Origin: Oculina patagonica
Taxonomy: Eukaryota
DNA length: 64,000 bases
Direction of reading: 5' to 3'
NCBI RefSeq assembly: GCF_052425735.1
Contig: NC_135764.1
Coordinates: 18,786,001 to 18,850,000, forward strand
Shown: positions 1,606 through 26,589 of the stretch, piece after piece
How the letters are laid out: each line of letters opens with the position of its first letter
Numbering within the stretch: the stretch's first letter is position 1
The notes under the pieces: model-generated
What the model saw: the letters and a program-made list of their open reading frames with translations, nothing else
Told to the model about the DNA's origin: nothing
The model's database searches: none
Position numbers and translations under genes: made by a program

Positions 1606-4600
1606 TCACTTTAAAGCTTCCACTTTAAACTCGATACACGGATAGCAAAATGGTCCAACATTCTCTACCGGTACACTGTCATCATCTCCCGTCACTTTTG
1701 TCTCCAAGGCAACCGTACAATTTCTCAGCAACACTACCAGTAAAACCTTCATGAAGGTGTCAGCCACGCGGTATCCCATGCACCTTCGCGGGCCAATACC
1801 AAAGCGACACAAACTTTTACGCATGCTCGGTGTTTCTTCGTCGAATCGTCGAGGATTGAAAGTTTCGGTATCGCCCCAGACTCCTGTGTTACTGTTCACT
1901 GCACTGTTGTCAACTGATACTTCAACCTGAAGGGAAGAAAGTTAGAACATACAACTTGTAAGTCTAATGCAAGGGAAAACACCATAGTTTTATCTTACCA
2001 GCAAAAGCAACCGTGTTTACCGTATCTACTGGAATAAGCGCCGCGGCGCTTATTAAATTTTTCGCTCCTCAAGTGCGGCGCTTATTTGAGGGCGGCGCTT
2101 ATTTAAAATTTGGACGCCACAAAGAATTTAACAGAAGTTAAAAATAGCGTCTTTTGATTGTCAGTATTTGTCTCTTGCTAAAGAGGGAAGTGGCGCTAGC
2201 TGTCCTGGCAAAGTTCGCGGCCTTCGCAACATTTACAGAACTACGTATTATAAGAACGTTGGATAGAAAAACTAATGGGCGAGCGGTAAAACTTATCACA
2301 TTTAACTGCAAGACATCGCTTTTGGTGGAAAAAAATGTCCAATTTTGTTTTAGAGTTGCCCTGTTGTGCTGTTTTTTCGACTATTTTGCTTGTTTACAAG
2401 CAAAAGTAGGAGATTAGGAGTGGTGTGGGCAAAATTTGGAACTCTCAAGGGACTTTTTTAATTTCTCAAGGGACTGTTTTAATTTCTCAAGGGATTTCTT
2501 TCCGCTCAGTGGGCGATGAAAGGGTCTCTTATTATTACTGCGTCAACACTTGCAAGCTCGTGTTAAAGACGTGACTTGTCACATATTCCGGTGTAGGTGA
2601 TGAAAGGGTCTCTCATTAGTATTGCGTCAACACTTGCGGGTTCAAATTGCGGCCTCGTGAAAAAGCATTAAAAACGCTAACAAAATTACAGAATTCAGAC
2701 TACTACAGAGAACCTTGAAAGAAACTTTGTTTAGAATTTATTTTTAGTTTGGATGAAGTCAAGAAATGTGTTGACAAGCGGCAGAGTATCGAAATTTTTC
2801 GCACCGTGCTGTACTGCACGGCAGAAATAATTATCCACATGTTCATGTTGAAAGCGAAGTTTTAATTTGAGCAGCCGGCTTTTGAAGTCAATTGTACACT
2901 AAATGGATTTACCGATCGTTCAAAAAATTACATCCAAGTTCATAGCAATAACAGTACATTACCATTTCGTTCTCAAAAGACTTGAGAAGCCGCAATTGGT
3001 CCTTGTTTAACTCCGTGATTTGAATTCAAAACGCATTTGTAAGCACCATTACACCATATCTTCGCGGCGGTGGAAGGAAAGATAAATCCTTCATCAACAA
3101 GGTTTCAGCACTCTGTACTCCATGGTTTTCCGTTTTAAGGCCACTTTAAAATTCTATAGTGTTTCTCCTTTCCGTTTTAAGTCCCAAATATGGTTTTTTT
3201 TCTTGTTCAGAATCAAAACAAGGCCTTGGAAGTTTGTAAATACAACCCGCGCGGCTCTACGATTTCCTTGTACGATTTCAATGCACGGAATAATACGAAA
3301 AACCTTCTTCTAGGACCCCAAGAGTTCTCTAAAAATATGCGCAGAAAACAGATTTTGATTGGTTTATTTGCCGTTATTATCTATAGAACAATACAAGAAC
3401 CAAAAAAACTCCAGGGAGGGTGGGAAAGGGCATATTCCGCTGTAGGTGATGAAAGGGTCTCTCATTAGTATTGCGTAAACACTTGCGGGTTCAAATTGCG
3501 GCGGCGTGGATTGAAGATTACTGTAATTTTTGCATACGCAAGCCAAATCGGTCATAAACTGTTTAAAAACGTTTTGTTCTTTGTATTAAAAGGAAAGTTC
3601 TTGGAGAGTGCGTTTTATCCAGTAGTACCAAGTTATCAGTACAAAGATACGCACGTTAATGCTTTAGTTTGGCAAGAGTGAAGTTAATGAAATAACATAA
3701 ACGGATACAAATTCCAGTGGTTTTTAACTGTTGCGGAGTGGAGTGGTTTTCAACGGTTTACGAAGTTTAAAGGAGCAATAGAGCTCTATCTACTGCTCAA
3801 TAAATTTGTTTTCAATAGCACTGAACTTGACAGTTGTCATAAACTTTTCTTCACCGTTGGAAGAATTCACTCTGGAAAAGAGACAGATGTTCAGTGGAGC
3901 AAGAGAGTTACCTTGAGTGCTAAGTGAGTACAATCTTGCGTTGATGTTGTTTGTATGAATGTGTCATGTGGTACAGATGTTTTATCGATAAAGTTATCGC
4001 TACATGGTTTCGCTTTTAGTCTTGGAATTTGAAGTATTTCCGCACTGCGGATGGTAAGCGAGTGGGGAAACGTCAACGCAGTTGCAGTATCTGGCAATTC
4101 TCATTTATGCTCGTGATTTTTGCCATCAGTAACTGGTTAACTCATTTGCCATCGTTTGCCAAAACGTACAATTTTTAAAGTGCTACGCTTTTCGTTCTTT
4201 TTTTTCTCTCACTTCTGTTATGTTCAATTTTTTTTAACACGTGTTTTCTTTTGTTCTGCCGTGTTTATTTATAGCCGTTTACGCTATTCCGTTGTCTTAG
4301 TTGTTATCAATGCTGACACACCCCTTGACACACCAGTTGAGATAAAATTCTCCCGTTATATGCTAAGCTGCGCTAAAGAAGTTTTTTTTCTTTTTAGAGA
4401 GATAAGCTACCACTTCCCTTATTCCATTTCTACGGTATGATACATTCTATGAATTTTTGGTATGGCAGTTTTAGTATTTAATCCTGAATTTCCTACTGTG
4501 CGATTAAGTAAGTCGCTAACAGGCTCGTTAGTATGTTTTCGTGAGCGATGCTTTTGAATTTACACAATGGACGCACAGCAAGATAAAACGAATTTCCGGT

Positions 4601-7600
4601 AATTGTTTGAGTACATAGGTGGTGGAAAACACGGATCCTGCTTCCCAAAATCCGTAACCGGGTTTACATTACGTTTTTGACGTAGGGTATAAGCAAGCCC
4701 GACAGTTTATAAATTTCAGTTAGAAACTAAACAGATGAAGTCTTCTTTTTAAGTTATCACCCAAGATTTTATTCTTTCTTATAATTTGAAACAGATTTTT
4801 GGTCTAATTAATTAGACCGTAAATCGCCAAAATTATTTTAATTCGCGTTACTTGCGTTCTCCTCCAAATTTGGTATACAGGAAGTGAATTTTATCCGCCA
4901 ATTACCTAGTGATTCCGGCCAAGAAACTTTAATGTGCCTTACATGACGATTTTTGCAGAAGTTATTCCTTCAGCAATATGGCGGTTTCGGCCCCCCCAAA
5001 TAATCATTACCTTAAATTGACGTATTTTTAATTGAAATGGTTCTTTGTTTTGGTAGCTGTTGTTGCCACTTTTTAAAATGTTTCACACTTCTGCGTTTTA
5101 CAAAATTCACACATACTGCGTTTTAAGAAAATACGTCAATGCGCATTTTACAATGTTCCTCCCATCAACCGTACCGTTCCACCGTTCCTACATTCCTCAT
5201 AATAAACTAACCAGAATATCCAGGACAACACAAATTTACATATTTCAACACTTGCACTCCTAAACAAAGTGAAAAGCCTAATTCACCCTTTAAAAAGAAC
5301 TACTCCATACCACAATTGACTGCCAACAGATAAACCATAGCAAAATAGTCGTAGTCTCACAGAGACCTTTGATTAGTTGAACGCAATTCCTCGAATAAAC
5401 GCCGCATCGGGACTGCGGCGCTTATTCGGGGGCGGCGCTTATTAACTTTTTTGTCCCAAATGCGGCGCTTATTTGAGGGCGGCGCTTATTCGAGTAAATA
5501 CGGTATGTTGGATACTCAAATAAATCAACTGAATTTGGTACAAAGGAAAGGAACTTAAACAAAACTTGAATTATTCTCTAGATTCTTTGAGCACTCATTA
5601 CCAGTCCTGGTTAGAACTACTAATTTACACAACAAGCCAAAGGTTCTTACCCCTGGGGGACTGTGAAAATTCCCGATTACCATTGGACAAGTAACATATT
5701 CCGGGGTACTGATCACCATCACGGGTCGTTTTCTGGCCGATTCCTTTACCACCTTACCCAGGAAATCCATTCTGTTGAGAGCGTCTAAACTCAAAGGTCC
5801 TGAAAGCTAAAGGAAAGTGGCATGCATTATTAGATTTTAAACGCAGTTTTATCGTACAGGGATAAAATAAATCAATGCGTCAGCTGGGCTAAAAACGATA
5901 ATACTTACAGCCTAAATACCGTACTAGATCTAAACAGAGAACGTACTTGATTCAGTTGATTGCCGCGTGCTGAAAGTTGAAACTATTTCTAATAAACTTG
6001 CATAATACGGTCACCCTTTTAACTAATGTGGCCACTTTCTGTTACTCTTTTGGCAGCCGTATTGCTTTAAACTAGCATCTGTTGGTTGTTCGTGTGGAAT
6101 AAAGCAGATACAAAACAATATTGTGTTTTCAGGAACTAGGTTTAGGAAAGCTCAGATTTCAACGACAAACCCTATTTCATAGGCTCGATTTACAGTCGCT
6201 TTTCGGGAGGAAAAGGCGGCGGAAATCAGTGATTACATCTAGTCCGCCTTATATGCGGGGGGCCGAGGTTCAATACCTCGCCGGGTAACCTCACATAGTA
6301 TATCTCGATATTAGACAATTACTCACTTTATACAACAGTTCTTTGTAGTTACCCTATGTCAGATCACCTGGGTTACCAACAATTACAATAATCCCAGTAG
6401 AATCTCCTTGGATTTTTAGCTATAATAGCGAACTACTTACTGGTGAAGTCGAGTCCTTGATCTCAGCTGTTAGTTCCTTCTGAACGTCTTGATGAAGAGC
6501 CACGTGAAACAGAAGCCAGGCTGTGGCACCGCACGTGATATCTACATTAGCAAGTGACGCTTCTTCCAGGGTTTCTTGAAACTAGAAATGAACAAAATGC
6601 CTCTTAGATGCCATTAAACTAAACTAGAAACAGGGTGAGATTCATACTAGCAATACAACAATGTTGGACTTAGCTAGGAAGGTGGGTGGAGTTAGTAAAA
6701 AGATTTGGCCTGGCTTGGATTGAAATTGATGAAATGCTGAGATGAAAGTCTCCTACGACCTAAAATAGCTGACATTCACACGTAACTACCTCTTCTTGTG
6801 ATACAACTCCAGGATTTTTAACAAGAGTTTGTTGGATCTTGTAAAAAGCACAGCTCGTGTCTTGCATCTTCCCCGCTGTAAACCGCTCTTCAAAACTAAG
6901 GATAATAAGAGACTGGGTTAGAGCGGTGGAGATCATAACAATATTAGAAACCAAAGCAAATACAAACTTAATCGTTTTATACCAAAATGTTGTATGAGAT
7001 CGATGATAAGTGAAGGAATAGTGAAGTAGAGGTAGAACAAGGCGGAATATTATTGGTCTTGTATTTCATTCCGTTGGCTGAAAACACGATATCAATACCC
7101 TGGGTGATGTTTAGAGGCAAAAACGTATATCCGTCATTACTTATCTTCAAAAATTATATAAAAAACTGCCTTTGAGCCTTTGAGGTTATAGCGAGGTGAT
7201 CACGGCTGTTTGCTCGTGATCAACTACGTTATTGCATTATTCAACATGCAGCAACAAACTTCAGAATAAAGATAGAAATACAAGAAAAAAGATACAAAGG
7301 ATTTGCTTACCATTTATTGAACTGCAGCCACCTTCTTTCAAACTCCGCCAATCTCTTGTTTGTGTTGGTAGGTAAGTATTTGTAAAATGGGAATTTAACA
7401 AGAGGGTTTGTGAAGGTATCGGCGATAAGAGTTCCTACCAGCGCTCTTAGATCAATCAACTCTTGTAGCTCCTCTTCAGTAACATCTCTGCCGTATGTGA
7501 ACTTCATTAGCATTCTAAACGTCAGGAGAATCAGATCATCCATGGTAATGACACCCTGAAATGAAAGAGTATTAAAGCAATGTCTAAGCGAACGATCGGT

Positions 7601-10600
7601 CGCCTTTGGATTACATGAGAGATCAAGTTATTTTGCTAGAGCACTATGTTCCAACATTAAATCAGCCAACCAGCCAACCCTTCTGTCTGCCCGTCCATCA
7701 ATCATTCATTCAGTCAGTCAGCCCACCGGCCAGGCAGCTAGCCAGCCAGTCAGTCAGCCAGCNNNNNNNNNNNNNNNNNNNNNNNNNNNNNNNNNNNNNN
7801 NNNNNNNNNNNNNNNNNNNNNNNNNNNNNNNNNNNNNNNNNNNNNNNNNNNNNNNNNNNNNNNNNNNNNNNNNNNNNNNNNNNNNNNNNNNNNTATGTTC
7901 TCACATTTCTAAGGTTGATGTAAGGTACATATATTTAAGTGAGAACGAGAGGATTAAGTACCTACTTAGAGCTGACAATGAACATACATCAAAAGTAGTA
8001 GGTAAATATATACATTCAATGTTTCAAAAAAGGAAAGAGCTTCTTAACTTACAAGCACAATGAACATTATAATTTTTTAATTTTTACATATATTGACATT
8101 ATGAATTGTATAAGAATCAAATATTTGTTATTTCTTAAATGTATTAGTAAATGCTAAAACCTTTGTTGTAAACAGACCAATACCTCCCTTTGGAGAGTAA
8201 GGCGCAATAAAGATATACTATTACTATTACTATTAATCAGTCAGTCAGTCAGTCAGTCAGACAGACAGTCAGTCAGTCAGTCAGTCAGTCAGTCATCGAT
8301 CAGTCAAAATACTATAAAGCATTTGCATGTAGCTTGTATACAAGTTCCTGATCAGTTACTGATACCTTTTTCTCTTCCACGATTAGTCGTAAGTACTGTT
8401 TACATTCCTGTTCCATCATATCCACAGTCCGTGTCACGCTCTCTGTACTGTAACACCCATCAAAGGTACTGCGTATGCGCTTGTGTGCGTCACCGCTGGC
8501 CGTGCCAGCTGCCTTACCAAACAGCTGACGAAACACACTGCCGAGTCGGAAGTCCTTCAGTCTCTCATACTTGTGTTGTTTGGACATAAACTTGACAGCG
8601 ATTTGTGGATCGGAGATTATGCTGTTGAAAACAATAATAATAAAAAAACACACATAAATGCTACTCAATTTCTTTGCTGAATGAACTGTTACTGACACCG
8701 ATGTCATCTTTCATCGCTCGATTTTCTTCAACCTCAACAACTACAGAAACAACAACAACAACAGCAATAAGACCAATTACAGACTTTCAGCGGGCATGCA
8801 AAACATCACAAAGTCACTTTTTTGTCATTAGGTGATACAATATATATTCGCAGCGTTCCCTGACATTACACAAAACACAGTGGCAAATTCCGGCAAAAAT
8901 TGTCGTAAAACTCATGATGTAGCATTTCGTTTGGCATAACACGTTGTAACTATTTTTTAGCTTCGTCGTAAAAAGAAAGGCTCTTTCCTCCTCTACCTTT
9001 TCATATTAGCTGAGGTTGCCGAAGAAGGTCACAGAAAAAATTGGCAAAATTCAAAATGCTCTTAGACTGCGGGGTACGTGGAGAAATTGCAGAATTCGCG
9101 AGCACATTCCCTGCGGCTACGTGATTCCCACGCCTCGCGAGCACATTCCCTGCGGCTACGTGATTCCCACGCCTCGCGAGCACATTCCCTGCGGCTACGT
9201 GATTCCCACGCCTCGCGAGCACATTCCCTGCGGCTGCGTGATTCCCACGCCTCGCGAGCACATTCCCTGCGGCTACGTGATTCCCACGCCTCGCGAGCAC
9301 ATTCCCTGCGGCTGCGTGATTCCCATGCCTCGCGAGCACATTCCCTGCGGCTACGTGATTCCCACGCCTCGCGAGCACATTCCCTGCGGCTACGTGATTC
9401 CCACGCCTCGCGATTTCTCTGCTTGCGATTTTCTGGCACGATTTTTTTCGTGGGAACACAAATCACGCCCGACCAATGGAAAAAAAAAACGAAAAAAAAA
9501 AAGCCTTCGTGTACATTACGTATAAATTCTAACTGAAAATAGGAAAATTAACAAAGCAAACATTACCAAGCCAAGTAAACATTACTTTGTACTTACAGTT
9601 TTGGAGGACCGGGTAAAAATCGGAGCAAGTACATTCCGAATTTCTTCAAGCTGTCATCTTTCATTGCGATTAATGTTGGTGAAAACGTTTTAAATCCAGT
9701 TCCTTTAATTACTTCACCAGAATCATTTTTCCAGAAGTAAACCTGAAAGTAAGAATTACAAAACGTAATATAAAACCATCTTCGTTTCTTTTTCGGTGCA
9801 TAAATCGGGGAAGTCCTTAGATTTCTTAGACTATAACCGACCCGATTTTTGTAAAATAGATAAATAAATAACCTTTATTTAGACACGGTGAGGATTAGAG
9901 CTAAAAGCTTGTGGGGTCGTGTCTACCCGATCGAATTGGAATTTGGAAGTCTAATATTTAATTAAAATATATTTAAATATTTCTCACGAAATATTCAGCA
10001 CACTTGCCCCGGGGTGGGATAAAAACAGAAGGCAAATGCCCCACTTTCGGGCTCATCGTGCAAAGAAAACTGCTCAAGACTCACAAGGGGGTCAAATGTC
10101 CCCGTGGGTAGGCAAATGCCCAGCCCCATAATCTCCTTCGCAGTCGTTGTTTCGGAAGCGTTGCGTGACATCCCCCCAACACACAAAAAGCCTGCGAGCA
10201 ATACCCCAGGGCAGCAATAAAATGAGACACTCCCCCGGGATTAATCGGAGAGCAAATTCCCGGCTTATGCCAGTGGGGGTGGGGGGGGGGAGTTGATAGG
10301 CAGCGCCATAAGTTATAATTTTTAAATATTTCTATGTCGTATCGCTCTTGAAGAGCACGGTACCGAATAATTAATGCGGTATCCAGGTTAGTTCACTCTT
10401 TTCTGCCCAGATAACGGAGATCTTTATACTAATTGGGTCGTGAATCAAATTATCCATTCGCACGAATCGAACTTGCACCTGGGTCACTGTTGTCACTAAA
10501 GAGATCCAGGGAAGAGATGCAGAACTTTTCGGATAGACAACACTGCCTTTCGACTCGAGCTCGTTATTAACATTATCCATTTGACGAATCGATCGAATTG

Positions 10601-10832
10601 GCAGGCACTGCTTTCACGGTAGTCGGAAATGAGATGCAATTTTCCGATCGACAACGAATAGAAATTTCTCTTTTCGGGTCGAATCCAGTGGACAGAATGC
10701 CATGGTGAATGACGCCAAGTTCAAACTCTCTAAGCGAAATACAGTTACACCTACCTCTGATATTTGTTTGTAAATCCACAATAATGAAACTAACAAGATA
10801 GTTAGGACAGCGAGGACAAGGCTAACAATCAT
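1606..10832 (-). CDS. Cytochrome P450, ~482 aa, 8 exons (10832-10755, 9742-9597, 8621-8366, 7555-7311, 6895-6790, 6581-6441, 5806-5651, 1926-1606); membrane-anchored, GliC-like by motif recall
   Basis: All introns are GT-AG and the phases are consistent (1449 nt total). N-terminal anchor MIVSLVLAVLTILLVSLLWIY, I-helix ETLEEASLANVDITCG, K-helix ESAR, PERF-like FNPRRF, heme motif FGIGPRRCMG (1774-1803). Confidence 0.93.
2020..5503. mobile_element. Non-autonomous Tc1/mariner/pogo-type DNA transposon (~3.5 kb) in the last P450 intron
   Basis: TA|ccgtatctactggaataagcgcc at the left end and ggcgcttattcgagtaaatacgg|TA at the right. Repeated subterminal gcggcgcttatt motifs. No transposase ORF seen. 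Confidence 0.8.
7700..8305. repeat. (TCAG/CCAG)n microsatellites and an assembly gap (N run 7763-7893) in P450 intron 3
   Basis: Seen directly at about 7700-7762 and 8237-8305. Confidence 0.9.
9096..9413. repeat. 39-bp minisatellite, 8 near-identical copies, in P450 intron 2
   Basis: Unit tcgcgagcacattccctgcggctacgtgattcccacgcc in head-to-tail tandem, with no spacers. Confidence 0.95.
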
Positions 10833-12234
10833 CGTGAAGACGGTTGATCAATTGCAACACTGAAGCCTGAGCGCTTATCGAAACTGAAGTTGAGAAATGT
10901 CACGCGAAGCCGGGTTTTGTTAGTTACTGCCGGGTTTTCCCCGAAATCACGTGGATACGAGAATGGGTCAACACTATATATATTTTGATATTCACTGGTT
11001 TGGTAATTTTCCCTCGATCTAAAATTCTCCTGTTAACGCACTAGGGTGCATTTCATGTGACTTTGTTGACGTCAATACAAGTACAAGGACTCAAGATCAA
11101 CTGACCTTTGAGAGTATTTCAAACCGGAAGTTCACATCCATATGTCGAAACCTCTGGTCACCCCTACTTTGCGGCGCTCTATTGCGCTAGTACGCCAAAC
11201 ATTATTACACATGGCTTGACAGATTTAGTAGACATTGCAGCTGCGATGAAAATAATAAGCCATATGAGTGTAATCGCTGGATATATAGCTCTGTCTCTTG
11301 GTTCATGTATTTGCATGCTTGATAAATTTTCTCAGTTGAAAACCAACTCTCCTCCAGAGGTTTCATGTGACTTGTTGACGTCAAAACATGCAAAATTTCC
11401 CGGATTCCCCGAAATCATAGATTGACGTAAATCACAACAGTTTCGTAAAACATTTTTTTTCCTTTTTTATGCGTTGTTGTAAATGCCCCCCCCCCCGGGG
11501 GGGTACTCCCCCAAAATACCTATACGGGTATGTGCTGCCCAACGGGGTCGTGATTTTGGGTTCCTGATCCGTTTTAGAGACGATGCCTAGAACGGGGTAT
11601 GATATTTCGAACGCACGAAAGTTTCAAATTATCAGCAGCAAAATTGACCTATTTCTTGGACGGGGTACATTTCGAATGCAAGTTCTCAAGTTGTTAACTT
11701 TGGAGACCCGGGCGGCACATACCTACCCAAAACATACCTGAGTACCCCCCACCGGGGGTGTAAATGCTTACAAAAGATTGATTCAATTGCGGTGGTTCAA
11801 CCCGGTTTAGCAAAGAACCAAGCGTCGTGTAAAGAGGAACTTTAATTTAAAATTTTAAAAATCGTTTGGCACATAATTTCATTGCAGTTCAATTGGGAAT
11901 TTCAACTAAGCGGAAAAATGAAAATGAAATTTAAGTTGCAGATAATTGGTTCTACCGGTGGTTCTTGGAATAAACTAATGCATGTGATCGATTTTGTAAA
12001 ATTGATGCTAAATGTGTCGACACGTCACCTGATAAGATTAGTTCCGGGAGATTGTAACCTACTTCGTTCCGCTTCGTTCCAGCGGAGCCGTAGCTGTTGA
12101 TTGGCCAATTCTCGCGTGGTAGGCGACATAAAAGCGGTCCCCAGTAGAACATTTGCATTTCAGCTGTACAGCGCTATCTCGAAACCCTTTGCACGCAAGT
12201 GTGTTACGCCAGGAGCTGAGCTTTTGCAGTCACA
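10833..12234. promoter_or_regulatory. Shared divergent promoter region of P450 and CDPS, with a duplicated TTTCATGTGACTT(T)GTTGACGTCAA element
   Basis: Head-to-head start codons 1.4 kb apart. Element at 11051-11075 and 11361-11384 (M-box/E-box plus CRE). kB-like sites at 10932-10942 and 11401-11410. Confidence 0.5.
11487..11758. mobile_element. MITE, MULE-like, 9-bp TSD
   Basis: Termini cccc..ggggggtactc / gagtaccccccaccggggg, flanked by the direct repeat tgtaaatgc (11478-11486 and 11759-11767). Confidence 0.7.
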
Positions 12235-14217
12235 ATGGTTCTCAATCTTGCTCAAGTCGAAGACAGCCTCGTTTTCCAAACAGGTCAAGATGTGATGGCA
12301 AACAACGGTGTTGTACTGTTTGGAATGAGCCCTGGAAATCCGTACTTTAAATCCCGCGTCATCGAGGACTATGTAGAGTACTTGGGAAAGGAACAGAGAA
12401 GAATCATTGTGGTGGTACCTCAGCAGCCTGCAGAACACACATACAGAGCTTTGGGAAGCAAGGATGCTGTCAAACGAGCCAAGAAAAATTCCAGTCAGCT
12501 CAAGTCGCATTGCAGGAGAGCAATTGAAAAGGTAACAGACGATAAGTTTAAGCACTGTTTATTATAGAAAATGGGAAAGTATCGGATTTTTCCCCTTCTT
12601 TTGCAAAACTATATGAGCAACGTCGCAGTACAGTTATATACCTCCTTGTGCAATTCTCCGTTTGGTTATTTACGTTATATTTTTTAATGAAACATCCAAT
12701 CGGGTTAATATTTTGCACAGATAAGTTGATAACAACATAATTTTATTAGCTAGCTTTCTTCAGCCCCGAAGAAGGCATTTTGACATTTTATTGGGCCCGG
12801 CCCGAAAAAAAAAATAAAAAATAGTTATCATAACTTTGGGTGAAGATGACATCTCATCTGAATTCATCGTCCAAAATGTCCTGACTTACCAGCTTAGTAT
12901 TACATGAAATTTTATCCGTGGAGTACATTCTGTTTTACGTCACGTCACTATATTTTTGCCTCACTTTACAACAATAGGGCCAACTTGGCTCAATCGTATA
13001 GCTGTGCGACTGTATTAGTTAAAATACCCCGGTTTAATAATAACGTTCTTACCCGGGTGATATTTTTTCCCCTGTGTAGGTGGGTAAGTCTGAGGCAATG
13101 GCCGGAGATTTTTACATGTTGGACTGGACTCGAGAAGTTGATACACACAAAGCATATATAGAAGCATTGGACTTCGTTATTAAGTTTTATAAGAACAATT
13201 CCAACTTCCGTTTAGATGTGGTAAAATCTACTGCTAAGGTTTTGGGAAAAGACGCCACTTCCTCAGATGAGAGTGAATCAGGTAGGCAAGTGGTTTTCCA
13301 CTAAAAAAAGGCGATTAGTTTCTCAAGAATTGTTGTGTCCTTACAATCGTTCTTTAAACTTAGTTTGTGCTTCTCCCTGCTAACATTAGTAACATATCCG
13401 TCCGTTTGATGCCATGTTTTAATTTCCAACTCAGTTGTACAGTAGAATCCTGATTTCTCGAAACCTTTGGGGGAACGTTGCCAAAATCGGCAGTTTCAAG
13501 GGTTCGAGCGAAATCGGGATATTACTGTCCGTGACAGCTTTCATCTATTTCTTGTCTTCAGTAAAGCATCTGATAGGTCTATCATAACTGTTGAAACATT
13601 TCACAATAACGTTTTTCTTGCTTAGTTGCTGTACGGCTTTCCTCAGCCCACAGGTCAATTCATTTCGATGACGTAGCCGAGACGAAAGCTTCGCAAGCAT
13701 CACGTGACCAATCCGAAACGACCGCGCGACGAATTTACCGAACGGCGTAATTTTCGAAGCTTAAAAACTAGGCAAAAAGCTGGCGAATACAGCCGCCTCT
13801 CATTCGAATGAGAGGCGGCTGTATTCGCAGCCTACTAGGCAAACGTTTCCTCGCAACAAAGGGCAGGAGAGGGAGGGTGTGTATGGCAGGGTGTTTGCAT
13901 ATAATTAGGAGAGACTCTACCTCAGTCTACTGATTCAGCACATTTTGTTGATACTGATGTGGTTTAACTTATTGGTAAATCTTTCTTTTTAAGAAACCTC
14001 TGACTCTGAGCTCGAGGTAGACGAAAACATCCAGGAAGGAGTGTACTACTTGCTAAAAGAACTTGCTTTTATAATCTCCAGCAAAGAGATCTTTAGGACA
14101 GACAGCGTGGCTGTCATTTACCATCGCAGCTGGCCTGTGTATGAGAAGTTTGTAAACGGAGATTATGACGGGGAGCCCAAGAAAGGACTGGGACTGGCCA
14201 TTATAAAATACAATTAA
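12235..14217 (+). CDS. tRNA-dependent cyclodipeptide synthase (CDPS, NYH subfamily), 240 aa, 3 exons (12235-12531, 13080-13281, 13994-14217)
   Basis: GT-AG introns in phases 0 and 1 give 723 nt. Motifs: LFGMSPGNPYF (catalytic Ser and Asn, AlbC S37/N40), basic helix KDAVKRAKKNSSQLKSHCRRAIEK, YLLKELAF (Y178/E182), VIYHR (Y202/H203). Exon 3 is absent from the ORF track because it has no start codon. AATAAA at 14496. Confidence 0.93.
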
Positions 14218-16124: not shown

Positions 16125-19100
16125 TTAACTATGCTCATCATGATCCTCATGGCTTCTCTGTACATATCCGGAAACATGTTTAAGTCTCTTGTCATGAGGA
16201 GTCATTAGCCCTTGTTCTACAGAGCCAGCTAATGTGTCTTCCAGTGAGGATGTCCGTCTATTCTCGGGTAAAAGCGGGATTTCCTCTGGCTCAGGTGGAC
16301 GGTACAGGTACAAAAACAGGATGATCCCCAGCAGGGTTAGTCCAGCGGAGCCCATGAACAGAAGCTCCCATCCCTGAATTGATAACTCGGCTTTGCTGAG
16401 GAGTGGAGCGATCACTTTGCCGGCCGACATTGCAGCAATACAGTAAGGCATTATGACCGGCTGGAGGAGAAAAACAAATGACACAAAATTATAAATACTT
16501 TTAAAAACATGCAAAGAGATCAGTCGTTTGATGAGCTACCCCGTTTGTTGCACGTTAAGAGAGGGGTGGTGGTGGTGGGGGGAGTAATGCCTAACATATC
16601 CCAATACTTTCGTTTCCTCATCAAAAGCAATGCCTTTTCAAACAAGCAAGTAACAAGAATAGAAAATTTATCACACGTTCCTAAGATGCTTTGTTTTTTG
16701 AATATATATGCGCTGCACGCGAAAGGGAGAGATGTCGGAGTCAGGTCGTTAGCAAAGCTACTGAATAGAGAAGATGCCGAGTTTTTCTCATTCTGGGAAG
16801 CTGTCACAAGCAAATCAACTAATATGGGTGTGATTGCCTACAGCAGGCTCTTTATGAACGGTTTGTTCTTACCATCATTGACTTGGCCACATATTTAGTC
16901 GTCAGTGAAGGTAATATTACTCCAGCAACGGAATACGTTAAAAACACCATGATTGCCCCACCAATGAAAAGAGCTTCCTTAACTGGAACTCGCAATGTAT
17001 TTAGAACCTGAAAAAATGAATGAAAGGTAGAAATAACATTGATTTTGTGAACGATAACCACAAATCAGAGATCAAGCATGTTGAACCCGGCCACTGTTCT
17101 CTTGTCCTAATAGAAGTAGGGGTGGGACTCCGTTTTTGAGAGCAGATGCTGATATAATGGGACATTACATTAAAACAACCAGAAGAGGAAAAGAAGTAAC
17201 TCCCAAAAAGGTACGAGAAAGAGCGTCATTTAAAACGCTTCAAATTTGAGGTATTACAGACACCCAGGATTACAGAGCTTAGGTATGGGATAAATCATGC
17301 TTTCCTCTGAAAATATGATAAAGAGAGCAGTACAATCCCATCAAAACGTTTGAGTAATTTTATCCCTTACTCGGATAGATAACAAGGATAAGTGTTAATG
17401 TCCTACATTGTGGAGACAGAACGGTATACATTTTCCATCACGACAGGCAAACATTGAATTAAGGAATTTTGACTCAAGAAATAAAACATTTCGCACTCAC
17501 TGAAGGTCCACCGAGATATGAAATCCCTATTGCGATGATCATGAACATGTAACAGACTGTAAGGACTCTTCTGTCGCCATGTTTATTGTTAGTCATACAC
17601 TTGGCTTTAGACATGAACGCCATGGTAAGCGCGGCTACTGTAGCTGTTCCTGAGACGCCCACCATCAACCAACCGTACTGCCAGACTTTAAAGTGGAAAT
17701 GGTTGTAAGCGACCAATGGCAGCACAAAGCCAACCCATGTGGTTATGAAGCCATTCAAAAGGTACAGCATCAAGCCCAAGAGAACACCACGTGACTTGAG
17801 TGAGCGTGCCACTGACACGCCATCGTCAGTGTCCCCTTAAAGAGAGTTCATGGAGTCACCATTTTTAGGGTCATTGTGCCTCTTAGAGAGGGTGAAAAGT
17901 TAAAAATTTCATTTAACTGCGAAATAAACCTACAGTAAACACCACAGTGTTCCGACTGACTGCGTTTCAAGGGGAGGGGCTTAACAGGCACGGCCAGGGG
18001 AAGAGGGGAGGGGGGAGGGGGAAGGGAGGAGTGGGATACCAATATATCTCATTTCTTTCCCCTGGGATACCAATATACCTTAAAAATGCAACAACGTCGT
18101 TAAAAGATACCTCAAATTGTTGAAATATAGAATACCCTATACCTGAAAATTTTTACAAAAAATACTGAATACCTTGGTAAAACACCCTAGATACTGTATA
18201 CCCCAAACCCCTGGCCGGGCCAGGCTTATGGTGCGTGTTTCTAAGGTAAGACCCTAAATCCGTAGGAGAAGCTAACAGAGGGAATGCGGTATTTCCTAAA
18301 TCATTTATAGCACCATCTTCTACCTTGCGAAAACGTGGAGTGTTTTTCTTTTATAACAACATATCCTTGTATGAAAATATTACTTAATGTTACTATATTT
18401 ACACGCAACTGTAATCAGAGTTGCACTATTTCTGGTTCCTCTGCGTTGTAGGATTATTTTTCTCTTTTCTCTTCTTATTACAGAATTTTTCAGTTTTCAC
18501 AATTCCAATCGTGTGTCCCCTAGCATGACGTTTGTCAATCAAAGTCATGCCATAGTCGTGCAACAAGACCAGCTAAGTCTCTGTCACCGAGCCAATCAAC
18601 TAACAACTCAATCAACTTACCAATTGGAGAACAGTCCTTTTCATCCAGAACAAACGTGACTAAGATTAAACAGATGCATAAGAACAGGATGGTGAGAGCA
18701 GCTGGAGCGGAGAACTCGTCGAGTCCTGTTGCTTTACCGAGAGCATTCTTACTAAAGTTGGGTAAAAACGTCGCTGATGCTGTGAGAAAAAAAAGCCAGG
18801 AATAAAGATTAGATTTTACCCAAGCCTTGATGACGATCCGGGGAGGGGGGAGGGGTTGCTAAGGCATTGATGCTGCTGCTAATTGCAATGTCAAAAGAAG
18901 ACAAAAATACTAAAACTCGCAACGAAGACGTCATTTTAATGATGGTATTAGTAATGTTTTCATCAACAGACAGGTCAATATTTGTTGTGGATGGACTTAC
19001 CAATCGTAGATGACATCACTCCAACCATGCACGTCACTCTGTAGTAAGACATGAATTTTGTGCGGGATTCTCGACTGGTGTTGGCGCCGATAAAACCATA

Positions 19101-20489
19101 AGCAACTCCTCCGCTACCTGGAAACAAAACAGGACAATCAGGAAATGAAGGTTTTATGTTGGCCACAAAGCTGGTCACATGGTTTTTAAAAGAGAACAAT
19201 TCTTTCGGTATTGTTGGATACAGGGGTAATCTTAATTATCCTTGTTATATGCTTATTGCTTTAAAATTACACAAGATCCTTTAACATCAATACTTTCGAG
19301 ACTCTTAGACTTTAATCTCAACGAATCATTCCCTTTTGCTCATTGGGGGCTGCCAGGAAAAATCTTGTTTCTTTTTTTCGCGGGAAATGACAGTTGACCA
19401 TCACAAAACAAATAATTAGTCGATTCTCTCACCTGCGCCGAAGCCAGCCAAAGCTCTTCCCAGAATAATCAGCACAACTGAGTTAGCTTTGTGTGCAGCC
19501 ATGTATGTCACGTTTCCACCAATAGCGATTATAAGAGAAGCTATAAGAACAATCTTGATCTGACACAGTTTCTTAACAAGCAGGCTGGCTACTGGCTGAG
19601 AAATTCCCTGTCCCAAGGGAAATAGACTCTGCGCCAAGGAGAGGTAAACTGCGGCAGAAGACGTTGTCTTAGATAGCTGAAGAGAGTCAAGAAAAGCTCG
19701 TTAGCCTACTTTCGAACCCCACCCAGGGGCTTTATAGGCTCGATTTCTGCTGCTCTTTCGGGCTCGCTTTTCCCGAACAGGGGCTGATATATGAGCCTAG
19801 GGGTTTTACCAATCTAGAGGAGGGATCCCCCTTTGTAGATTCATGCAGTTGACGTTTCGAGCGGGGGTCAGCGAAGGATTTGACAAATGGAGAACGCATG
19901 AAACACTGTAAACACCACCATCCTATCGGAAGAAGCGTTTGTAAGATTGTGATGGTTTGTGAGCAGTTTAAAATATCAAGCTTGTCTTGAAATATATGTT
20001 TTCTAAAAGACTATGTAACAGCTGTTATGCATTTAAACGTTAACAGTGTTATGTTCAAAACGCGAGCGGAAACAGAGCAAGAAATATTCATGTTTCGGTT
20101 CCAAAGACTTCATCGTCAACTGGCTGACATATCGTTTCAAGATCGATTTTGTTTGCCTAGCTAGAGATGCCTGTTTTCAATAAATTTAATTACAGTTTCT
20201 AACTCGGAGAACTCATTAAGCAACTGGCCAGCAGATTTTTAAAGGATAGATTATTATTTAAACGTGGAAAATCATTTCCGGTTTCATTATATTTGATTTC
20301 ACGGTGATTTCGATACTCGTGTTTGTGAAATAAATAAATAATAAAAGAAATAAAATTCATACCTTGAATGAAAGATATACTTACAGAAAGGATGTATGGG
20401 TATATTGAAGTCATAACTACGGCCCATTCCAGATAATTAACAAAGCCAACCAGTAGAACCACGGCAATGTTCGTTTTGCTCAATGCCAT
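16125..20489 (-). CDS. Major facilitator superfamily transporter (MFSD8/CLN7-like), ~476 aa, 7 exons (20489-20385, 19676-19433, 19117-19001, 18779-18621, 17835-17501, 17007-16873, 16460-16125)
   Basis: Many hydrophobic helices; TM1 FVNYLEWAVVMTSIYPYI; motif ILGRALAGFGAG; AYGFIGANTSRESRTKFMS. Splice phases are consistent (1431 nt). Confidence 0.88.
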
Positions 20490-20943: not shown

Positions 20944-23900
20944 ATGCACCGATTATCGAGTCCTCGCTCTGTCTTCACAAGAGTGTTTTATTATCGGAAC
21001 AGTTTCCCTTCCTCGCTGCTATGTGCAGCAACAAAACCCGCAGAGCATCTCATAGAGGAAGAGGCTAACCGCATCACAAAGGATATCAAGGCAAGCCTTT
21101 CATTTTTTTGAGCATTGAGACCACAGTGTGGCTGTGGCTTGAGACCATAGTTGATCGAGGATAGAAATCAACATTAATTTCATATTGACCAGGAAAAATA
21201 ATTTTAATTAATAATTCTTTAAAAAGGTTCAAGGTAAAGCCAACCTACAGTACCTTTGCTTCCGAATGCAAGCAGACTTCCGCTTCGTGTAAATCGGTAC
21301 TCGAATACGGTACTCGATGACTCTCTTCCGAATGGGGATGATTTTATTGTTTCATAATTGTTGTGCGTGGCAAACACAAATCACCACGTGCAAGTTCTGT
21401 AACGCTGTTGAATTGGGTGGTGTTTCTGTTAAAAAGAACTTGGTTTCTGCCTTCAAAATTTATTTGGAAAGTAGTGCTTTAAAAGATTCTCGATTCATCG
21501 ATAGGAAAAGAAGAAATAGCAAAGAGGGCCTCTCAAGAGGGGGGGGGGGGGGGGAAACCATGTTCCTTTGTTCCCAACAAAATTTTCCTTGTGTTCCCGT
21601 GTTCCCTAAGAGTTTTTTTTTTCGATGAAGTCTTTACAAATGAGAATGTGACAATGCGCGTATGAAATAAATCAGCAATTGTGTGAACTGTGGATAATCA
21701 ACCCAAGTGACGCAGTGGTGACGTCGTAAACTCAACATTAACCCTGTTCTCATAAGCTCTTGACGTCCTGAACAGCTGTTACTGACGCACAAATGATATC
21801 AGGTGGCCAAATTCTGCTAAACTGAACTACACACGGAAAACCTATTAATTTCACGGGGCAAAACAGGATTTTCTGGCGTAATAAATTTAAGTATGACCTT
21901 CGCGGCACTGAGCTATCTTTCAAAAAATTTAGCCCTAATAAGGCCAATAGCTATAAAAACCCTCTCCCCCCAACCTGCAAAATCAATGTCCGAAAAAGAA
22001 AAGTTACGTTGTAATAAAAACTTCAAATATTCTACTAGTCACAGGAAGCGTTGGGAAAACCAGACTTGCAGAAGAGAGTACTGAAGTGGGATGAAAAGTT
22101 GCCAATTCCTGACCCTCCCCCACTGAAGAGTCTCTTGGACTTTTTAGTCCGAAGGCGAACACTGTCTTGTTCAAGTGGTTTGCAGCTTGGTTTGAACAAG
22201 CTTCTTGTTCGATCTGCTATCCGTGTCTTGGGACTTCAACGTGCACATGAAAGGTGAACGAGAAAAAAACTTGTAATATCTAGACTGGTGACACAGTAAA
22301 TAGTTCTTTTATATTTAAAACTGGTCCCTTGAGAAACAAATATATTTTTTTCGGGGGATGGAGCTAGGGGAAACGTCGAGATTCGAGGGAAAAAATTGAT
22401 TGGTTTCCCGACTTTAGAAGAACGGAGCTCGAGGCCGTCGGTCAACATTCGCGGATCGCGGTGTACTGTTACCCTCTGACGTCATAGATTTTGCAATGTA
22501 ACCCGCTCAGAGACTTTTGGCGGGAAAAAGTTTTGTTGTTGGAGGAAAAAACTCATGCTTTTCTATTCCAATGCCATTTATCTCCTAGATTTTCTTAAAA
22601 GGGCGTAGGACAAGTGAGGTTATAGGCCGCAACCTTGAAATGTGCAAGTTTACGCAATTATTATGCATTGTAAATTTATGTGACTGCATGTGTGAAATAA
22701 ATGTTATCTTTTATAGAAAACAATTATCTTATTATCCCCAAAGTCCTCTCAGGCTTTCAGTCTCACTTCTTTTTCCTCGTTCACCAAAGGTTAAACACAT
22801 TATTTTCTCTTGGTTTTAACGCATACTAATATATTGTTTTCTTCTGGCCTTAGAATGTGTGAACAGCACTCAAGCGACACTGTACACAACTGTTGGTATG
22901 CGCCAGCCAATCACGGCGACACATTTGGTATCCGCCATGATGAAATATACTTCCACGAAGACATTATTCCTTCACAGCCTGTGACGTCATATGCTGTGCT
23001 GATCCGGGGGAGCCCAGGTAATCCTGGGACATCAGTTGATGGCGGCATTGGAGAAAACGAGAGTTCACTAAATGTTGCTTCGATAAACAACCCAGATGTC
23101 ATGGTTGACCGTGCCGCCTCTCTTGTAGATGGACTCATCATGAAAGCCAGGGATTTTTACATGAGCAGTGAATTTAACCAAGATGTGATCAAGAAGACAC
23201 CACTCTCTATGCAGTGGTATAATTACATCTTTTCGTGCTCTATGCAGTTTCTCCCAGGTTCCATTGAGCGCTACAAGGCCCCTGCAGGTCACTCAAGGCA
23301 CATCATTGTGATGATGCGTGGTAACATGTACAAAATGGATCTTATATACAGCAATGAAGACGGACAAGAGAAGAGAATCACAGGCAATGAACTAAAAGTA
23401 AGTAAAGTAAAACTTAAAGGAGAAGTTCACTCCAGAATGGTCATTTATTTTTTATTTTAAGATATGTTATTCACCAAAATTTTAGCCTCCAACGTTCGCT
23501 ATAACCCTATGAAATCTTTTGCAAAACGCGACAACTGAACGCCGCCATCTTGGAGCTGGTAATGTATGCGTGACGTCAAAGAGCTCAGCCTGAAGTTCGG
23601 AGGGAAAATTTTAATAGTCGAAACTCCTTGTTTTTTGTATTTCATGGAGCTCTGTTTGAGCAAAATGAAGCTGCACAAACAGGCATTTTGTCAAACAAAA
23701 GCCACTACGAAGAAACAAATAGTTCCGAGTATTTATATTTTAAAGTAAGCACTTGTAGATACACATACATACATGTATATAGTATGTAGTGAGTCCAGTT
23801 CACTAATAAACATAATTATATTTATATTTTCCCGCCAAACTTCAGGCTGAGCTCTTTGACGTCATGCATACATTACCAGCTCCAAGATGGCGGCGTTCAG

Positions 23901-26589
23901 TTGTCGAGTTTTGGGAAAGATTTCGTATAACCTGCGTAGCAGAGCGTCGAAAGGGGAGGGAGGGGGAGTTGGGAAGAGGGAGAGAAAGAGAAAAAAAAAC
24001 GGAGGGGGAGTGGGGACGTTCCCTCTTCCCCCCTTCCCCTTCTTCCCCCCTCTCCCTTTCCCTCCCCTTTTTACGCCTGCCACGCAGGCTAGATTTCGTA
24101 GGGTTATAGCGCACATTGGAGGCTAAAATTTTGGTGAATAACATATCTTTGTATAAACTTTTTATTGGCGTAAAGAAAATAAATGGCCATTCTGGAGTGA
24201 ACTTCTCCTTTAAGCCACCAGAAAGATCATTACAGTATCTTTTACAAGGACACGGAGGTTCAGCTTATTTTATCTAGTTTTATCAATTTCAATTTGGAAC
24301 GTCGGCATTTACACACGCAGTTTGAGTGGTTTTCGCGCGAATACTTTCAGTTTACTGTACTTAAATGACACCTGGTACGCATGGACATGTTGGCCAGTAA
24401 GAGTTTGGCAATCACGTGCAATGGACCAGTTATAACTTGCAACTCATCTTTTATGCCCAGAATTGAACATTTTTAAAAAGGTTTTATTATTTGGCAGTGA
24501 AATAAACACCGACGCTTTCTCCAAGGAAATATTTTAGTTACATAAACCCTATGGAAGATTCTTTGGGATATTCCACAACCACCACTTATGGTCCACTTCT
24601 TTTTCTATGTTTACAGAGTCAAATGAAAGATATTTTACAAATGGACGCCTCGAGAGAACAGTCGACTCCGATAGCTGTTCTAACAAGTATGACTCCAACT
24701 GAGAGATGCCAGGAAGAACAACGCCTAAAGTGCCTCAGCGAACGAAACATCACTAATCTCTCGCTTGTCCGCGATGCCCTCTTTGTCGTCGCGCTGGACC
24801 CTGACGAATATCCACAAACAGCAAACGAAGCCATGTTCGCGCTTCATTCGGGAAACTTCGTAAACCGCTGGTATGACAAGAGCGTGCAGCTGGTTGTGTT
24901 CGGCAACGGTGTGGCGGGATTCGTTAATAACTATTTAGCAGGAATGACAGGAACAGTCGGGACAAACTTTGTGCGGATTGCTGTGAGAAATGAAAGGCTA
25001 TACCAAGAGAAGACGGTTAGCGGTAAGTAGTTGTGTAGAGAAAACAGAAACGAGACAAAAAAGAAAAAGAAAAATGGATCAGAAACTGTTACTTATGAGT
25101 GATCGAAAGAAAGAAAGGAAGAACTGATGAATTAATGAAAAATGAATGAATTTATTAATGAGTGAATGAGTGAATGAACAAGTGGTGGAATAAATGAATA
25201 AACAACACTGAGAACATGGCAAAAACTGATATAAAAGAGCGATCGTTGAAAAAAGTTTAAAATTGGTTTAAAACTGATTTTTCTTGTGTAAGTACATCCA
25301 TCTTAGATCAAATGATCATTTGCGAACTACTTAGTTGTAAAATGTCAAATGTTATTTTCACTTTCAAATATTTGATTAGATGATGAAGACAAGATCTGGC
25401 CAGAACCCTTTGCTATCAGCTGGGATGACAGTGCAGACGGATATTTCAAACAGAAGATTAACAGTGTAATCAATACCAGTCGAACATCTGGGCCCTTTAA
25501 GCCGCTGTCTCAAGACGTGTTTAAAATCTGGTCTGGCTCCAGTTTTGAGGAGATGTGTAAGGCGCATCAGGTTACCCCAGGTGGTGCCTTCCAAGCTGGA
25601 CTGCAGCTGGCGCTCGCCAAGATTGCTGGGAGATGTATGAGTGTAAATGAAGTGGTCAGCATAAGGTGAGACTTAATATAAGAAGTGGAAACTATGTTTG
25701 GAAAGGTTTTATAATAATGAAAAACGTAGTCCTAGTTTATCAAAGCCCGTTAGCTAAATGACTTAAAGTTTTCTTCCTTGTTTGCTTACAGCGGGCCTTG
25801 CTGTAAAATAACTGATTTTCATCAACTCATTTCTTTAGTTACACAAGTTTTCAGAGCTTTATTTTCCAGCCGCGTGCGATGTACGATCATTCTTTTCTAG
25901 TTCTTTTTTAAAATATTCCTCGACGTTTTTATTTTAGGATAGGTACTCAGTTTTCTTTATCTACAACATTTGATTCAACGTTTTTCTCTTCCAGGCACCT
26001 TCGGTTTGGCGGAATGACATTAATGGATAGCAGCATGGCGGACATGACGAAATTCGTCGAAGAAGCCAGCAAACCAGCACAACACAGCATTCAAGACATA
26101 AGTGAGCAGGAACGTTCGGTACTGAAAGCTCTGTTGAAGAAAGCAATTCACAGCTACAAAGACGAGGTCCTGCGTTATAAGAACGGTGAAATCAATCTGT
26201 GGCATCTAGACTCTCTTTATAGAAATCTTGGTCTGGCTAATCGTCTTCCGTTCCGAAAAACTCCACAATTTGAACTGAAGAGGAGTTTAAAAGAAGTTGT
26301 ACTGGGATATCTTAGAGCACCTAAATTCAATATACTGCCGCCCCAGGTCGCCGAAAACGTGACATCCAATCCCTGCTGGTATCCTGAAATCGAAGCTATC
26401 GGGAGGCCTGGGGTCAAGTGCATACTGCCACCAACCTCAATGGCGCTGCATTACATGTTTGGGAGAAATGCGATTTCCATCACAGTGAATGCAAATCCTG
26501 ATCATCCTTGTTATAAAAACGAGGAGGAATTTGTCAAGGTACTCGAGAAGTGTTTGCAGTTCGTCACAGCTTTGCTTGATTCAAAATAA
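20944..26589 (+). CDS. Choline/carnitine O-acyltransferase-family protein with divergent active site, ~730 aa, 6 exons (20944-21090, 22039-22253, 22854-23397, 24617-25022, 25380-25665, 25995-26589)
   Basis: Family motifs LPIPDPPPL, PLSMQWYNYIFS, SRHIIVMMRGNMYK, ALFVVALD, NRWYDKSVQLVVFGNG, FQAGLQLA. Phases are consistent (2193 nt). Exon 1 requires a GC donor (AAG|gcaagc) and is the least certain part. Confidence 0.85.
23418..24209. mobile_element. TTAA-flanked MITE (Kolobok-like) with long inverted arms and a nested insertion at about 23929-24091
   Basis: TTAA|aggagaagttcactccagaatgg ... ccattctggagtgaacttctcct|TTAA. The arms match for about 190 bp apart from the nested piece. Confidence 0.8.

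Follow-up and report, generated by a model that had tools for sequence, protein, structure and literature searches.

Does the cytochrome P450 encoded beside a cyclodipeptide synthase (CDPS) gene in a stony coral belong among the ordinary animal P450s, and on what might it act? The two genes lie in a 64-kb stretch of Oculina patagonica DNA (NC_135764.1, positions 18,786,001-18,850,000 of the forward strand), which we call the window and whose positions serve as coordinates throughout. The P450 gene occupies 1606-10832 on the minus strand from start to stop codon, and the CDPS gene lies at 12235-14217 on the plus strand. The original prediction held that the P450 resembles the fungal GliC-type diketopiperazine (DKP) hydroxylases more than the usual animal CYP clans, that a DKP oxidase next to a DKP synthase speaks for a common pathway, and that ancient horizontal transfer or deep retention brought the gene to its present host. 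We conclude, with moderate confidence, that the P450 is a functional microsomal enzyme of the GliC clade, that its gene is resident in the coral genome and paired with the CDPS gene, and that the enzyme probably acts on the cyclodipeptide made by the CDPS. To our knowledge, animal-encoded small-molecule biosynthetic gene clusters are rare. When cyclodipeptides turn up in corals, the usual attribution is to the associated microbes. The locus offers a well-defined candidate, open to testing, for the pathway by which a coral would make a modified DKP.

Results

Sequence relatives of the coral P450

A HMMER comparison of the last P450 exon with 1.84 billion representative proteins gave 15 proteins in all at E ≤ 1e-10, with corals at 61-90% identity followed by an abrupt fall to 39% or less. 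Re-scoring of the fetched proteins with the full-length coral protein (P0153) gave 118-189 bits for those that carry the I-helix signature described below. The highest scores belonged to P0018, from a contig of 69% GC (189 bits), P0246 (183 bits), P0100 from the predatory protist Ancoracysta twista (Provora; 182 bits) and P0127 (181 bits). P0035, named 'cytochrome P450 oxidoreductase GliC' of Penicillium psychrosexuale, scored 154 bits (several of the protein names are automated annotations), and other fungal P450s from Xylaria, Trichoderma, Halenospora, a lichen fungus, Aspergillus spectabilis and Gigaspora scored 118-150 bits. The best solved structures were an ancestral CYP11A1 (84 bits), CYP3A4 (68 bits), CYP51 (61 bits), CYP1A2 (59 bits) and CYP17 (58 bits), followed by CYP24 (55 bits), CYP4B1 (47 bits), CYP46A1 (46 bits) and CYP2C9 (41 bits). 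The fungal scores of 118-154 bits against at most 84 bits for the solved structures, together with the clade and the common signature residues reported below, bear out the predicted greater closeness to fungal GliC-type enzymes than to the usual animal CYP clans.

A profile built from the corals alone separated the same proteins. Those of at least 380 aa that bear the signature (n = 42) scored 102-206 bits in all but three cases, and the three low scorers (28-60 bits) are one partial sequence and likely chance matches to the pattern. Proteins without the signature stayed at or below 75 bits, with the lone exception of P0050 (132 bits), a clade member that the text pattern had missed. Other searches added little: a word-indexed homologue search with P0002 returned corals alone, the same kind of search with P0018 returned distant generic P450s alone, and a 17-sequence profile retrieved little beyond its own input sequences. 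P0018 had no match among prokaryotic genomes, which leaves a bacterial source for its 69% GC contig without support.

Position in the tree and the clade signature

Relationships were examined in a neighbour-joining tree of 145 near-full-length P450s (421 columns, Kimura distances, 200 bootstraps). The six coral sequences grouped together in 200/200 bootstraps and fell, in 185/200, inside a clade of 40 members that also holds the fungal enzymes of the epipolythiodioxopiperazine (ETP) type, P0018, the protist sequence and a giant-virus-like group. The P450s that fell elsewhere in the tree were the animal references (an oyster CYP3A-like protein, bird CYP1A4-like proteins and insect CYP305 and CYP15) as well as plant P450s, fungal CYP53 and FUM15, and bacterial CYP135-like proteins. 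The phylogenetic check that the original prediction had called for thus puts the corals with the GliC relatives and the references of clans 2 and 3 elsewhere, and membership of the coral P450 in the clade that contains the GliC/SirC-type enzymes is supported by sequence.

The I-helix of the coral enzyme reads ANVDIT at 6551-6534 (aa 288-293), exactly as first described, with the codon of Asn289 at 6548-6546 and that of Ile292 at 6539-6537. All 40 clade members have Asn at position 289 and Val, Ile or Phe at position 292 in a single alignment, whereas of the 105 other P450s 101 have Gly at the first of these positions and 101 have Thr at the second; Asp291 is kept. Measured against these 105 canonical P450s, the replacement of the I-helix Gly by Asn and of Thr by Ile had been read correctly. 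The Asn together with the lost Thr (pattern N-x-D-[V/I]) is a hallmark of the clade. Ten more signature positions (G102, G114, Y181, F232, W236, T281, E284, S347, D382 and N387) each occur in all corals, in at least 82% of the clade and in at most 13% of the other P450s.

The evidence speaks against membership of a standard metazoan clan (2, 3, 4, mito, 7, 19, 20, 26, 46, 51 or 74): the coral P450 scores higher to non-animal P450s, the clan 2 and 3 references lie outside its clade, and the canonical I-helix [AG]G-x-[DE]-T is absent. No nesting inside an animal clan was found, clans 2 and 3 being represented in the tree and the other clans by PDB scores of at most 84 bits.

The invariant Asn and the absent Thr suggest non-canonical proton delivery or substrate anchoring. 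In EryF, a P450 that lacks the Thr, oxygen activation is substrate-assisted, and by analogy oxygen activation in the coral P450 could resemble that of EryF. The I-helix pattern and the ten further positions identify the clade in fungi, protists, giant viruses and corals. It was missed by a survey of cnidarian CYPomes (Nematostella, Acropora, Hydra and Aurelia), which lists no such I-helix motif (PMC8110760).

Gene structure and integrity of the coding sequence

The P450 gene has eight exons and seven introns, all GT-AG, and its coding sequence of 1449 nt specifies 482 aa, the length originally predicted. The model is identical at 482/482 residues (100%) to P0153, which is the NCBI protein KAL9967374.1 / XP_078376107.1 (hypothetical protein ACROYT_G025583, Oculina patagonica). 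All exons are on the minus strand. Exon 1 (10755-10832) encodes aa 1-26 with the N-terminal membrane anchor, and exon 2 (9597-9742; aa 27-75) ends in phase 2 at a boundary that matches Porites and metagenome coral contigs. Exon 3 (8366-8621; aa 75-160) ends in phase 0 at the donor AAG/GTATCA and includes the B'-C stretch beginning LGSVF (8545-8471); exon 4 (7311-7555; aa 161-242) starts in phase 0 after a TTTCAG acceptor and ends in phase 2, and exon 5 (6790-6895) covers aa 242-277. The I-helix lies in exon 6 (6441-6581; aa 278-324), which matches positions 270-305 of the Pfam p450 profile and contains the 23-residue I-helix stretch at 6575-6507. Exon 7 (5651-5806; aa 325-376) encodes the K-helix with its ExxR motif, ESAR at aa 346 (5743-5732). 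Exon 8 (1606-1926) encodes aa 377-482 and the stop codon (Pfam p450, E = 1.4e-12), and holds the meander motif PRRF at aa 401 (1854-1843) and the haem loop beginning RFGIG (1806-1759), with FxxGxRxCxG at aa 418-427 and the Cys425 codon at 1782-1780. The motifs quoted in the original prediction were all located, in exons 3, 6 and 8.

PF00067 matches exons 4, 6, 7 and 8, of which exons 7 and 8 alone pass the Pfam curated cut-off. With this profile, the ExxR, PRRF and Cys-loop motifs and a P450 fold, the coral protein is a member of the cytochrome P450 superfamily with an intact catalytic core. Its AlphaFold2 (AF2) model (pLDDT 90.7, pTM 0.90) has a hydrophobic N-terminal helix at residues 2-25, from which the enzyme is predicted to be membrane-anchored. 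A Foldseek comparison of the model with the PDB gave a flat list (TM 0.67-0.76, 15-22% identity) without an informative nearest structure, and the Foldseek/PDB matches include no solved structure from the clade of the coral enzyme. In the C-helix WxxxR motif (aa 121, in the 8485-8471 region), Trp is replaced by His in 6/6 corals; most other aligned clade members keep Trp, and two do not.

The window is eukaryotic in character, at about 39% GC with exon-sized open frames, and the GC content of the P450 gene is similar to that of its surroundings. O. patagonica belongs to the order Scleractinia, suborder Vacatina, and the gene is on a 33.3-Mb chromosome-scale record, between a cadherin gene and the MFS and CDPS genes.

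An assembly gap, a run of N at 7763-7893, lies inside intron 3 between the end of exon 3 (8366) and the start of exon 4 (7555). The intron contains a TCAG microsatellite at 8237-8306, and TCAG-type repeats flank the run of N on both sides, which explains the break in the assembly. An exon hidden in the gap was considered and ruled out. In six gap-free genomic contigs of other corals (L003, L011, L015, L016, L018 and L019), one intron, about 230-1600 bp long, interrupts the frame at aa 160/161, the six coral orthologues are collinear across this junction without insertion, and three cDNA-like contigs (L012, L013 and L014) cross it uninterrupted. This indicates that the gap contains no coding sequence and that the reading frame does not depend on it. 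A separate exon model in which LPGPP at about 9600 formed an N-terminal Pro-rich hinge was also discarded, as the motif is part of the beta-1 region encoded by exon 2 and the eight-exon model matches the annotated protein. Intron 2 holds a 39-bp minisatellite (9096-9413; 8.2 copies, 97% matches) that gives rise to long spurious open reading frames (ORFs) on both strands.

Conservation of the CDPS-P450 pair, expression and selection

The CDPS gene has three exons (12235-12531, 13080-13281 and 13994-14217) and encodes 240 aa (PF16715, E = 9.9e-13). The three-exon model is the only GT-AG model that yields the annotated 240 aa, and the NCBI record annotates a CDPS; searched against the PDB, exon 1 gave marginal matches alone (BtCDPS, E ~0.009). 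A spacer of 1402 bp (10833-12234) separates the divergent start codons of the P450 and CDPS genes and is presumed to be a shared (bidirectional) promoter region. This head-to-head arrangement with a PF16715 gene agrees with the proposal that a CDPS takes the place of the nonribosomal peptide synthetase (NRPS) of the fungal pathways.

The pair recurs in other corals. In Porites lobata (suborder Refertina), contig CALNXK010000131.1 carries tandem pairs of CDPS (minus strand) and P450 (plus strand) in two arrays (L003 and L011) about 450 kb apart, with at least four CDPS-P450 pairs and parts of further P450 copies; the spacers are comparable, at 1.2-1.9 kb. The cassette therefore duplicates and amplifies as a unit in Porites. 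A metagenome coral contig (L019) has the order MFS-CDPS-P450 in the same orientation as in Oculina, and another such contig (L015) has, downstream of the P450, the same cadherin gene as Oculina. The presence of the pair in both Oculina (Vacatina) and Porites (Refertina) indicates that the pairing predates the split of the two scleractinian suborders. The conserved, co-duplicated pairs strengthen the argument originally drawn from a DKP oxidase lying beside a DKP synthase.

Porites and four other coral contigs keep the intron positions of the P450 gene, and the cDNA-like contigs show that other corals transcribe and splice it. A 1.6-kb Logan contig encodes all 482 aa; L012 and L013 hold the whole or near-whole frame unbroken, and L014 is spliced at all the introns that it covers except intron 2. 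Between Oculina and Porites, dN is 0.119 and dS 1.14 over 275 codons (dN/dS 0.10), and the coral P450 is under purifying selection.

Gene neighbourhoods of the fungal relatives

Three fungal P450s of the clade (P0096, P0110 and P0121) belong to ETP clusters as judged from their gene neighbourhoods. P0096, from A. spectabilis, occupies the gliC position: it is preceded by genes for an aminotransferase, an M19 dipeptidase and an A-T-C-A-T-C-T NRPS (the GliI-GliJ-GliP order) and followed by O-methyltransferase, glutathione S-transferase (GST), AclK_C (GliK-like) and MFS genes. PMC9030297 gives the list of gli genes and reports that the P and C genes lie side by side in every case. Around P0110, from Trichoderma, the order is NRPS, aminotransferase, prenyltransferase, P450 and GST, which mirrors the tcpP-tcpI-tcpD-tcpC-tcpG order of Claviceps (PMC4938161). 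P0121, from Xylaria, is flanked by GST and O-methyltransferase genes, and its wider neighbourhood holds an NRPS gene and genes of the aminotransferase, MFS and GliK-like types. Two further members, P0035 and P0111, lie beside NRPSs with no GST in view.

Other genes in the window

The gene adjoining the CDPS is an annotated MFS/sugar-transporter-type gene (16125-20489, minus strand; PF00083/PF07690, exon matches to MFS_1), and its product is a possible exporter. Beyond it, at approximately 22810-26589 on the plus strand, is a divergent gene of the carnitine/choline-acyltransferase family with PF00755 on two exons, which scores about 28 bits against the solved animal octanoyl-, palmitoyl- and choline acetyl-transferases. 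It lies about 12 kb from the P450 and is 45-60% identical in blocks to an acyltransferase encoded head-to-head with P0018 on contig L002 (723-2588, minus strand; 69% GC). The P450 and this acyltransferase may travel together, and the acyltransferase is a possible tailoring enzyme and candidate member of the pathway. A single-exon gene of the Sulfotransfer_4 family (28169-28891, plus strand; 240 aa, PF17784, E = 2.1e-54) lies near the CDPS-P450-MFS group and is likewise a possible tailoring enzyme and candidate member of the pathway.

Farther along, two genes are single uninterrupted ORFs, unlike their multi-exon neighbours: one resembles a protein prenyltransferase beta subunit (32198-33406, minus strand; 402 aa, PF00432) and the other TAM41 (51997-53001, plus strand; 334 aa, PF09139). 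From about 54990 to the window end at 64000 there is a virus-like element of the Maverick/Polinton type. Its large frames are polymerase-like, and one of them includes an endonuclease VII domain. The element also has an integrase of the rve type, a packaging ATPase of the Pox_A32 type and, on the opposite strand, several unassigned ORFs; the polymerase-like frame is apparently in two pieces, with one apparent frame break.

Discussion

We propose a pathway of three steps. The CDPS would make a cyclodipeptide from two aminoacyl-tRNAs. This product would be the substrate of the P450, which, presumably co-transcribed with the CDPS from the shared 1.4-kb spacer and co-regulated with it, would oxidise the DKP scaffold, at the alpha-carbon if the analogy with GliC holds. 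The neighbouring MFS protein would export the product. The arrangement joins a host-encoded CDPS to a tailoring P450 of a clade best known from fungal gliotoxin-type pathways. The conservation of the pair across corals suggests that these animals themselves encode a pathway to a modified cyclic dipeptide.

Several observations weigh against this interpretation. The tree is biased in its sampling, its sequences having been chosen for their resemblance to the coral last exon and to P0018, and the named animal references in it represent clans 2 and 3 alone, the other clans being covered by the PDB scores. Within the clade, a fungal group of 21 was recovered without the corals (137/200); the coral branch does not arise within this fungal ETP subclade, and any sister grouping of it has support below 25%. 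Coral and fungal members are 22-26% identical in the multiple alignment and about 30% in the best local BLASTP, the highest-scoring non-coral relatives are non-fungal sequences, and the link to GliC runs through positional orthologues and an NCBI name, Aspergillus fumigatus GliC itself (EDP49542.1) and SirC (AAS92547.1), as listed in PMC4938161, not being in the comparison. At the level of the locus, three fungal ETP loci were compared with the 64-kb window by tblastx; one of them (L007) gave a P450-P450 match alone and the other two gave none, and homologues of the GST (GliG), GliI, GliJ, GliK and GliT were not found in the window by tblastx and Pfam searches of large ORFs, the rest of the genome not having been searched. 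Members of the clade elsewhere lie beside an NRPS without a GST or, in the case of P0018, without any peptide synthetase, and with such varied neighbourhoods the chemistry of the clade need not be uniform.

Because the corals fall outside the fungal ETP subclade and sulfur-insertion genes were not found in the window, the coral P450 is a separate lineage in the clade, a relative of GliC and not its orthologue. The original label of a GliC-type enzyme therefore stands at the family level and does not extend to a place within the fungal ETP subclade or to the sulfur-insertion genes of an ETP cluster in these 64 kb. With no sulfur-insertion or glutathione genes of the ETP type found in the window, an epidithio (ETP) product of the coral locus is unlikely.

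The same observations bear on the alternative that survives best, which we consider unlikely and still a serious competitor: that the family and the CDPS partnership are as described and the reaction is a different one, such as side-chain oxidation, N-hydroxylation, dehydrogenation, or C-C or C-N coupling. Clade members in NRPS clusters that lack a GST, the position of P0018 away from any peptide synthetase, the separate coral subclade with its low alignment identity to the ETP enzymes, and the sulfur-insertion genes not found in the window would all be expected under it, and the bacterial CYP121 and CYP134A1 carry out coupling or multi-step oxidation according to work cited in PMC4159871. The sole clade members with an assigned reaction, GliC and SirC, argue for the ring, as both are reported to bishydroxylate the alpha-carbons of the DKP (PMC4938161, PMC9030297). 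The I-helix signature and the ten positions that the corals have in common with these enzymes also suggest a common handling of oxygen or substrate.

A second question is how a coral came to have this P450. Among named animal sequences the clade was seen in Scleractinia alone; its other members are from fungi, the Provora protist, and giant-virus-like and other contigs. We favour horizontal gain before the scleractinian radiation, probably from a non-animal donor, as a simpler reading than deep retention with many losses. Inheritance from an early eukaryotic or opisthokont ancestor, followed by loss in nearly all other animals, would accommodate the spread of the clade over fungi, a Provora protist and corals as well as the seven spliceosomal introns and typical coral base composition of the gene. 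We consider it rather improbable, since the scan of 1.84 billion proteins gave no other close named animal sequence, an I-helix motif of this kind is not listed for the published CYPomes of Nematostella, Acropora, Hydra and Aurelia (PMC8110760), the partner CDPS is of an enzyme type found mostly in bacteria (PMC5816076), and giant-virus contigs with clade members offer a possible vehicle of transfer. Of the two origins first proposed, ancient transfer is thus favoured by the distribution, and deep retention is kept as the lesser rival.

The viral members form a P450 subclade with the I-helix signature of the clade on AT-rich (23-28% GC), intronless contigs (L009, L010, L021 and L022). These giant-virus-like contigs carry F-box, ankyrin, FtsJ and RNA-polymerase-subunit genes, and relatives of their P450s occur on IMG/VR GVMAG contigs. 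On L010, the P450 gene is head-to-head with a two-module NRPS gene (A-T-C-A-T).

Much less probable is an ordinary animal-clan CYP whose I-helix has degenerated, as in CYP20, and we give this explanation very little weight. Degenerate I-helices are known in animal CYPs (PMC8110760), and the best solved-structure matches of the coral protein are the animal enzymes CYP11A1, CYP3A4/5 and CYP4B1. These matches are weak, however, at 84 bits or less and 15-22% identity on a flat Foldseek list, whereas non-animal proteins with the signature reach 102-206 bits. The 185/200 clade excludes the oyster CYP3A-like, bird CYP1A-like and insect CYP305/CYP15 proteins, and eleven positions are common to the coral enzyme and the fungal, protist and viral members and not to the other 105 P450s. 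The idea that the gene is fungal, protist or symbiont contamination, or a pseudogene in decay that chance placed beside the CDPS, has in its favour that the nearest non-coral relatives are all non-animal, and is refuted by the place of the gene between cadherin and MFS/CDPS genes on a 33-Mb record, its seven GT-AG introns at positions conserved in Porites and four coral contigs, its coral-like GC content, its intact frame with all core motifs, its dN/dS of 0.10, the spliced transcripts of other corals and the co-duplicated pairs in Porites.

The interpretation that we prefer, a resident GliC-clade P450 that acts on the cyclodipeptide of its CDPS partner, can be extended to a wider and clearly more tentative one, which we regard as possible and on balance doubtful. 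The locus would then be the coral's own biosynthetic cluster with parts of different origin, gained horizontally before the deepest split of Scleractinia, perhaps through a giant virus, and amplified in Porites. Its parts may include the bacterial-type CDPS, the GliC-clade P450, the MFS exporter and possibly the acyltransferase and Sulfotransfer_4 genes. The host-made product, an undescribed modified cyclodipeptide, may be hydroxylated, O-acylated or sulfated.

Comparison with known systems

The closest known counterparts are the fungal enzymes of the GliC/SirC/TcpC type, from the gliotoxin, sirodesmin and clapurine pathways. They have in common with the coral enzyme the clade (185/200), the I-helix pattern, the ten signature positions, an N-terminal membrane anchor and a gene that adjoins that of a DKP-making enzyme. 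In the fungi this partner is an NRPS, whereas in the coral it is a tRNA-dependent CDPS. The coral gene also differs in being an animal gene with seven introns and in the C-helix change of Trp to His in all six corals, and the fungal genes for GST, gamma-glutamyl cyclotransferase, dipeptidase, C-S lyase and disulfide oxidase were not found in the coral window.

The P450s of giant viruses (Nucleocytoviricota) form a subclade of the same 40-member clade and have the same I-helix signature as the coral enzyme. They differ from it in their identity of about 23-27%, their intronless genes and their partner, which is an NRPS or none.

Among animals, the known CDPS is that of Nematostella vectensis (Seguin et al. 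2011, as cited in PMC4159871). It is likewise encoded by an anthozoan and is a precedent for tRNA-dependent DKP synthesis in cnidarians, but in the coral the CDPS is accompanied by a transporter and by a tailoring P450 that is conserved. No P450 partner of the Nematostella enzyme was found described in the literature searched, and when the last exon of the coral P450 was compared with the 1.84 billion representative proteins, no orthologue from a sea anemone came up.

The bacterial enzymes CYP121 of Mycobacterium tuberculosis and CYP134A1 (CypX) of Bacillus subtilis have genes next to that of a CDPS and use its cyclodipeptide as their substrate, according to work cited in PMC4159871 and PMC4938161. 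They follow the same CDPS-P450 pathway logic that we propose for the coral. Neither is among the best 60 of 225 solved-structure sequence matches of the coral P450 or among its 50 listed Foldseek matches, and both are soluble bacterial enzymes, in contrast to the coral P450 with its predicted membrane anchor and its place in a clade of eukaryotes and giant viruses. The coral locus is therefore a new pairing, of a CDPS with a GliC-clade P450, which bridges the bacterial CDPS-P450 and the fungal NRPS-GliC logics.

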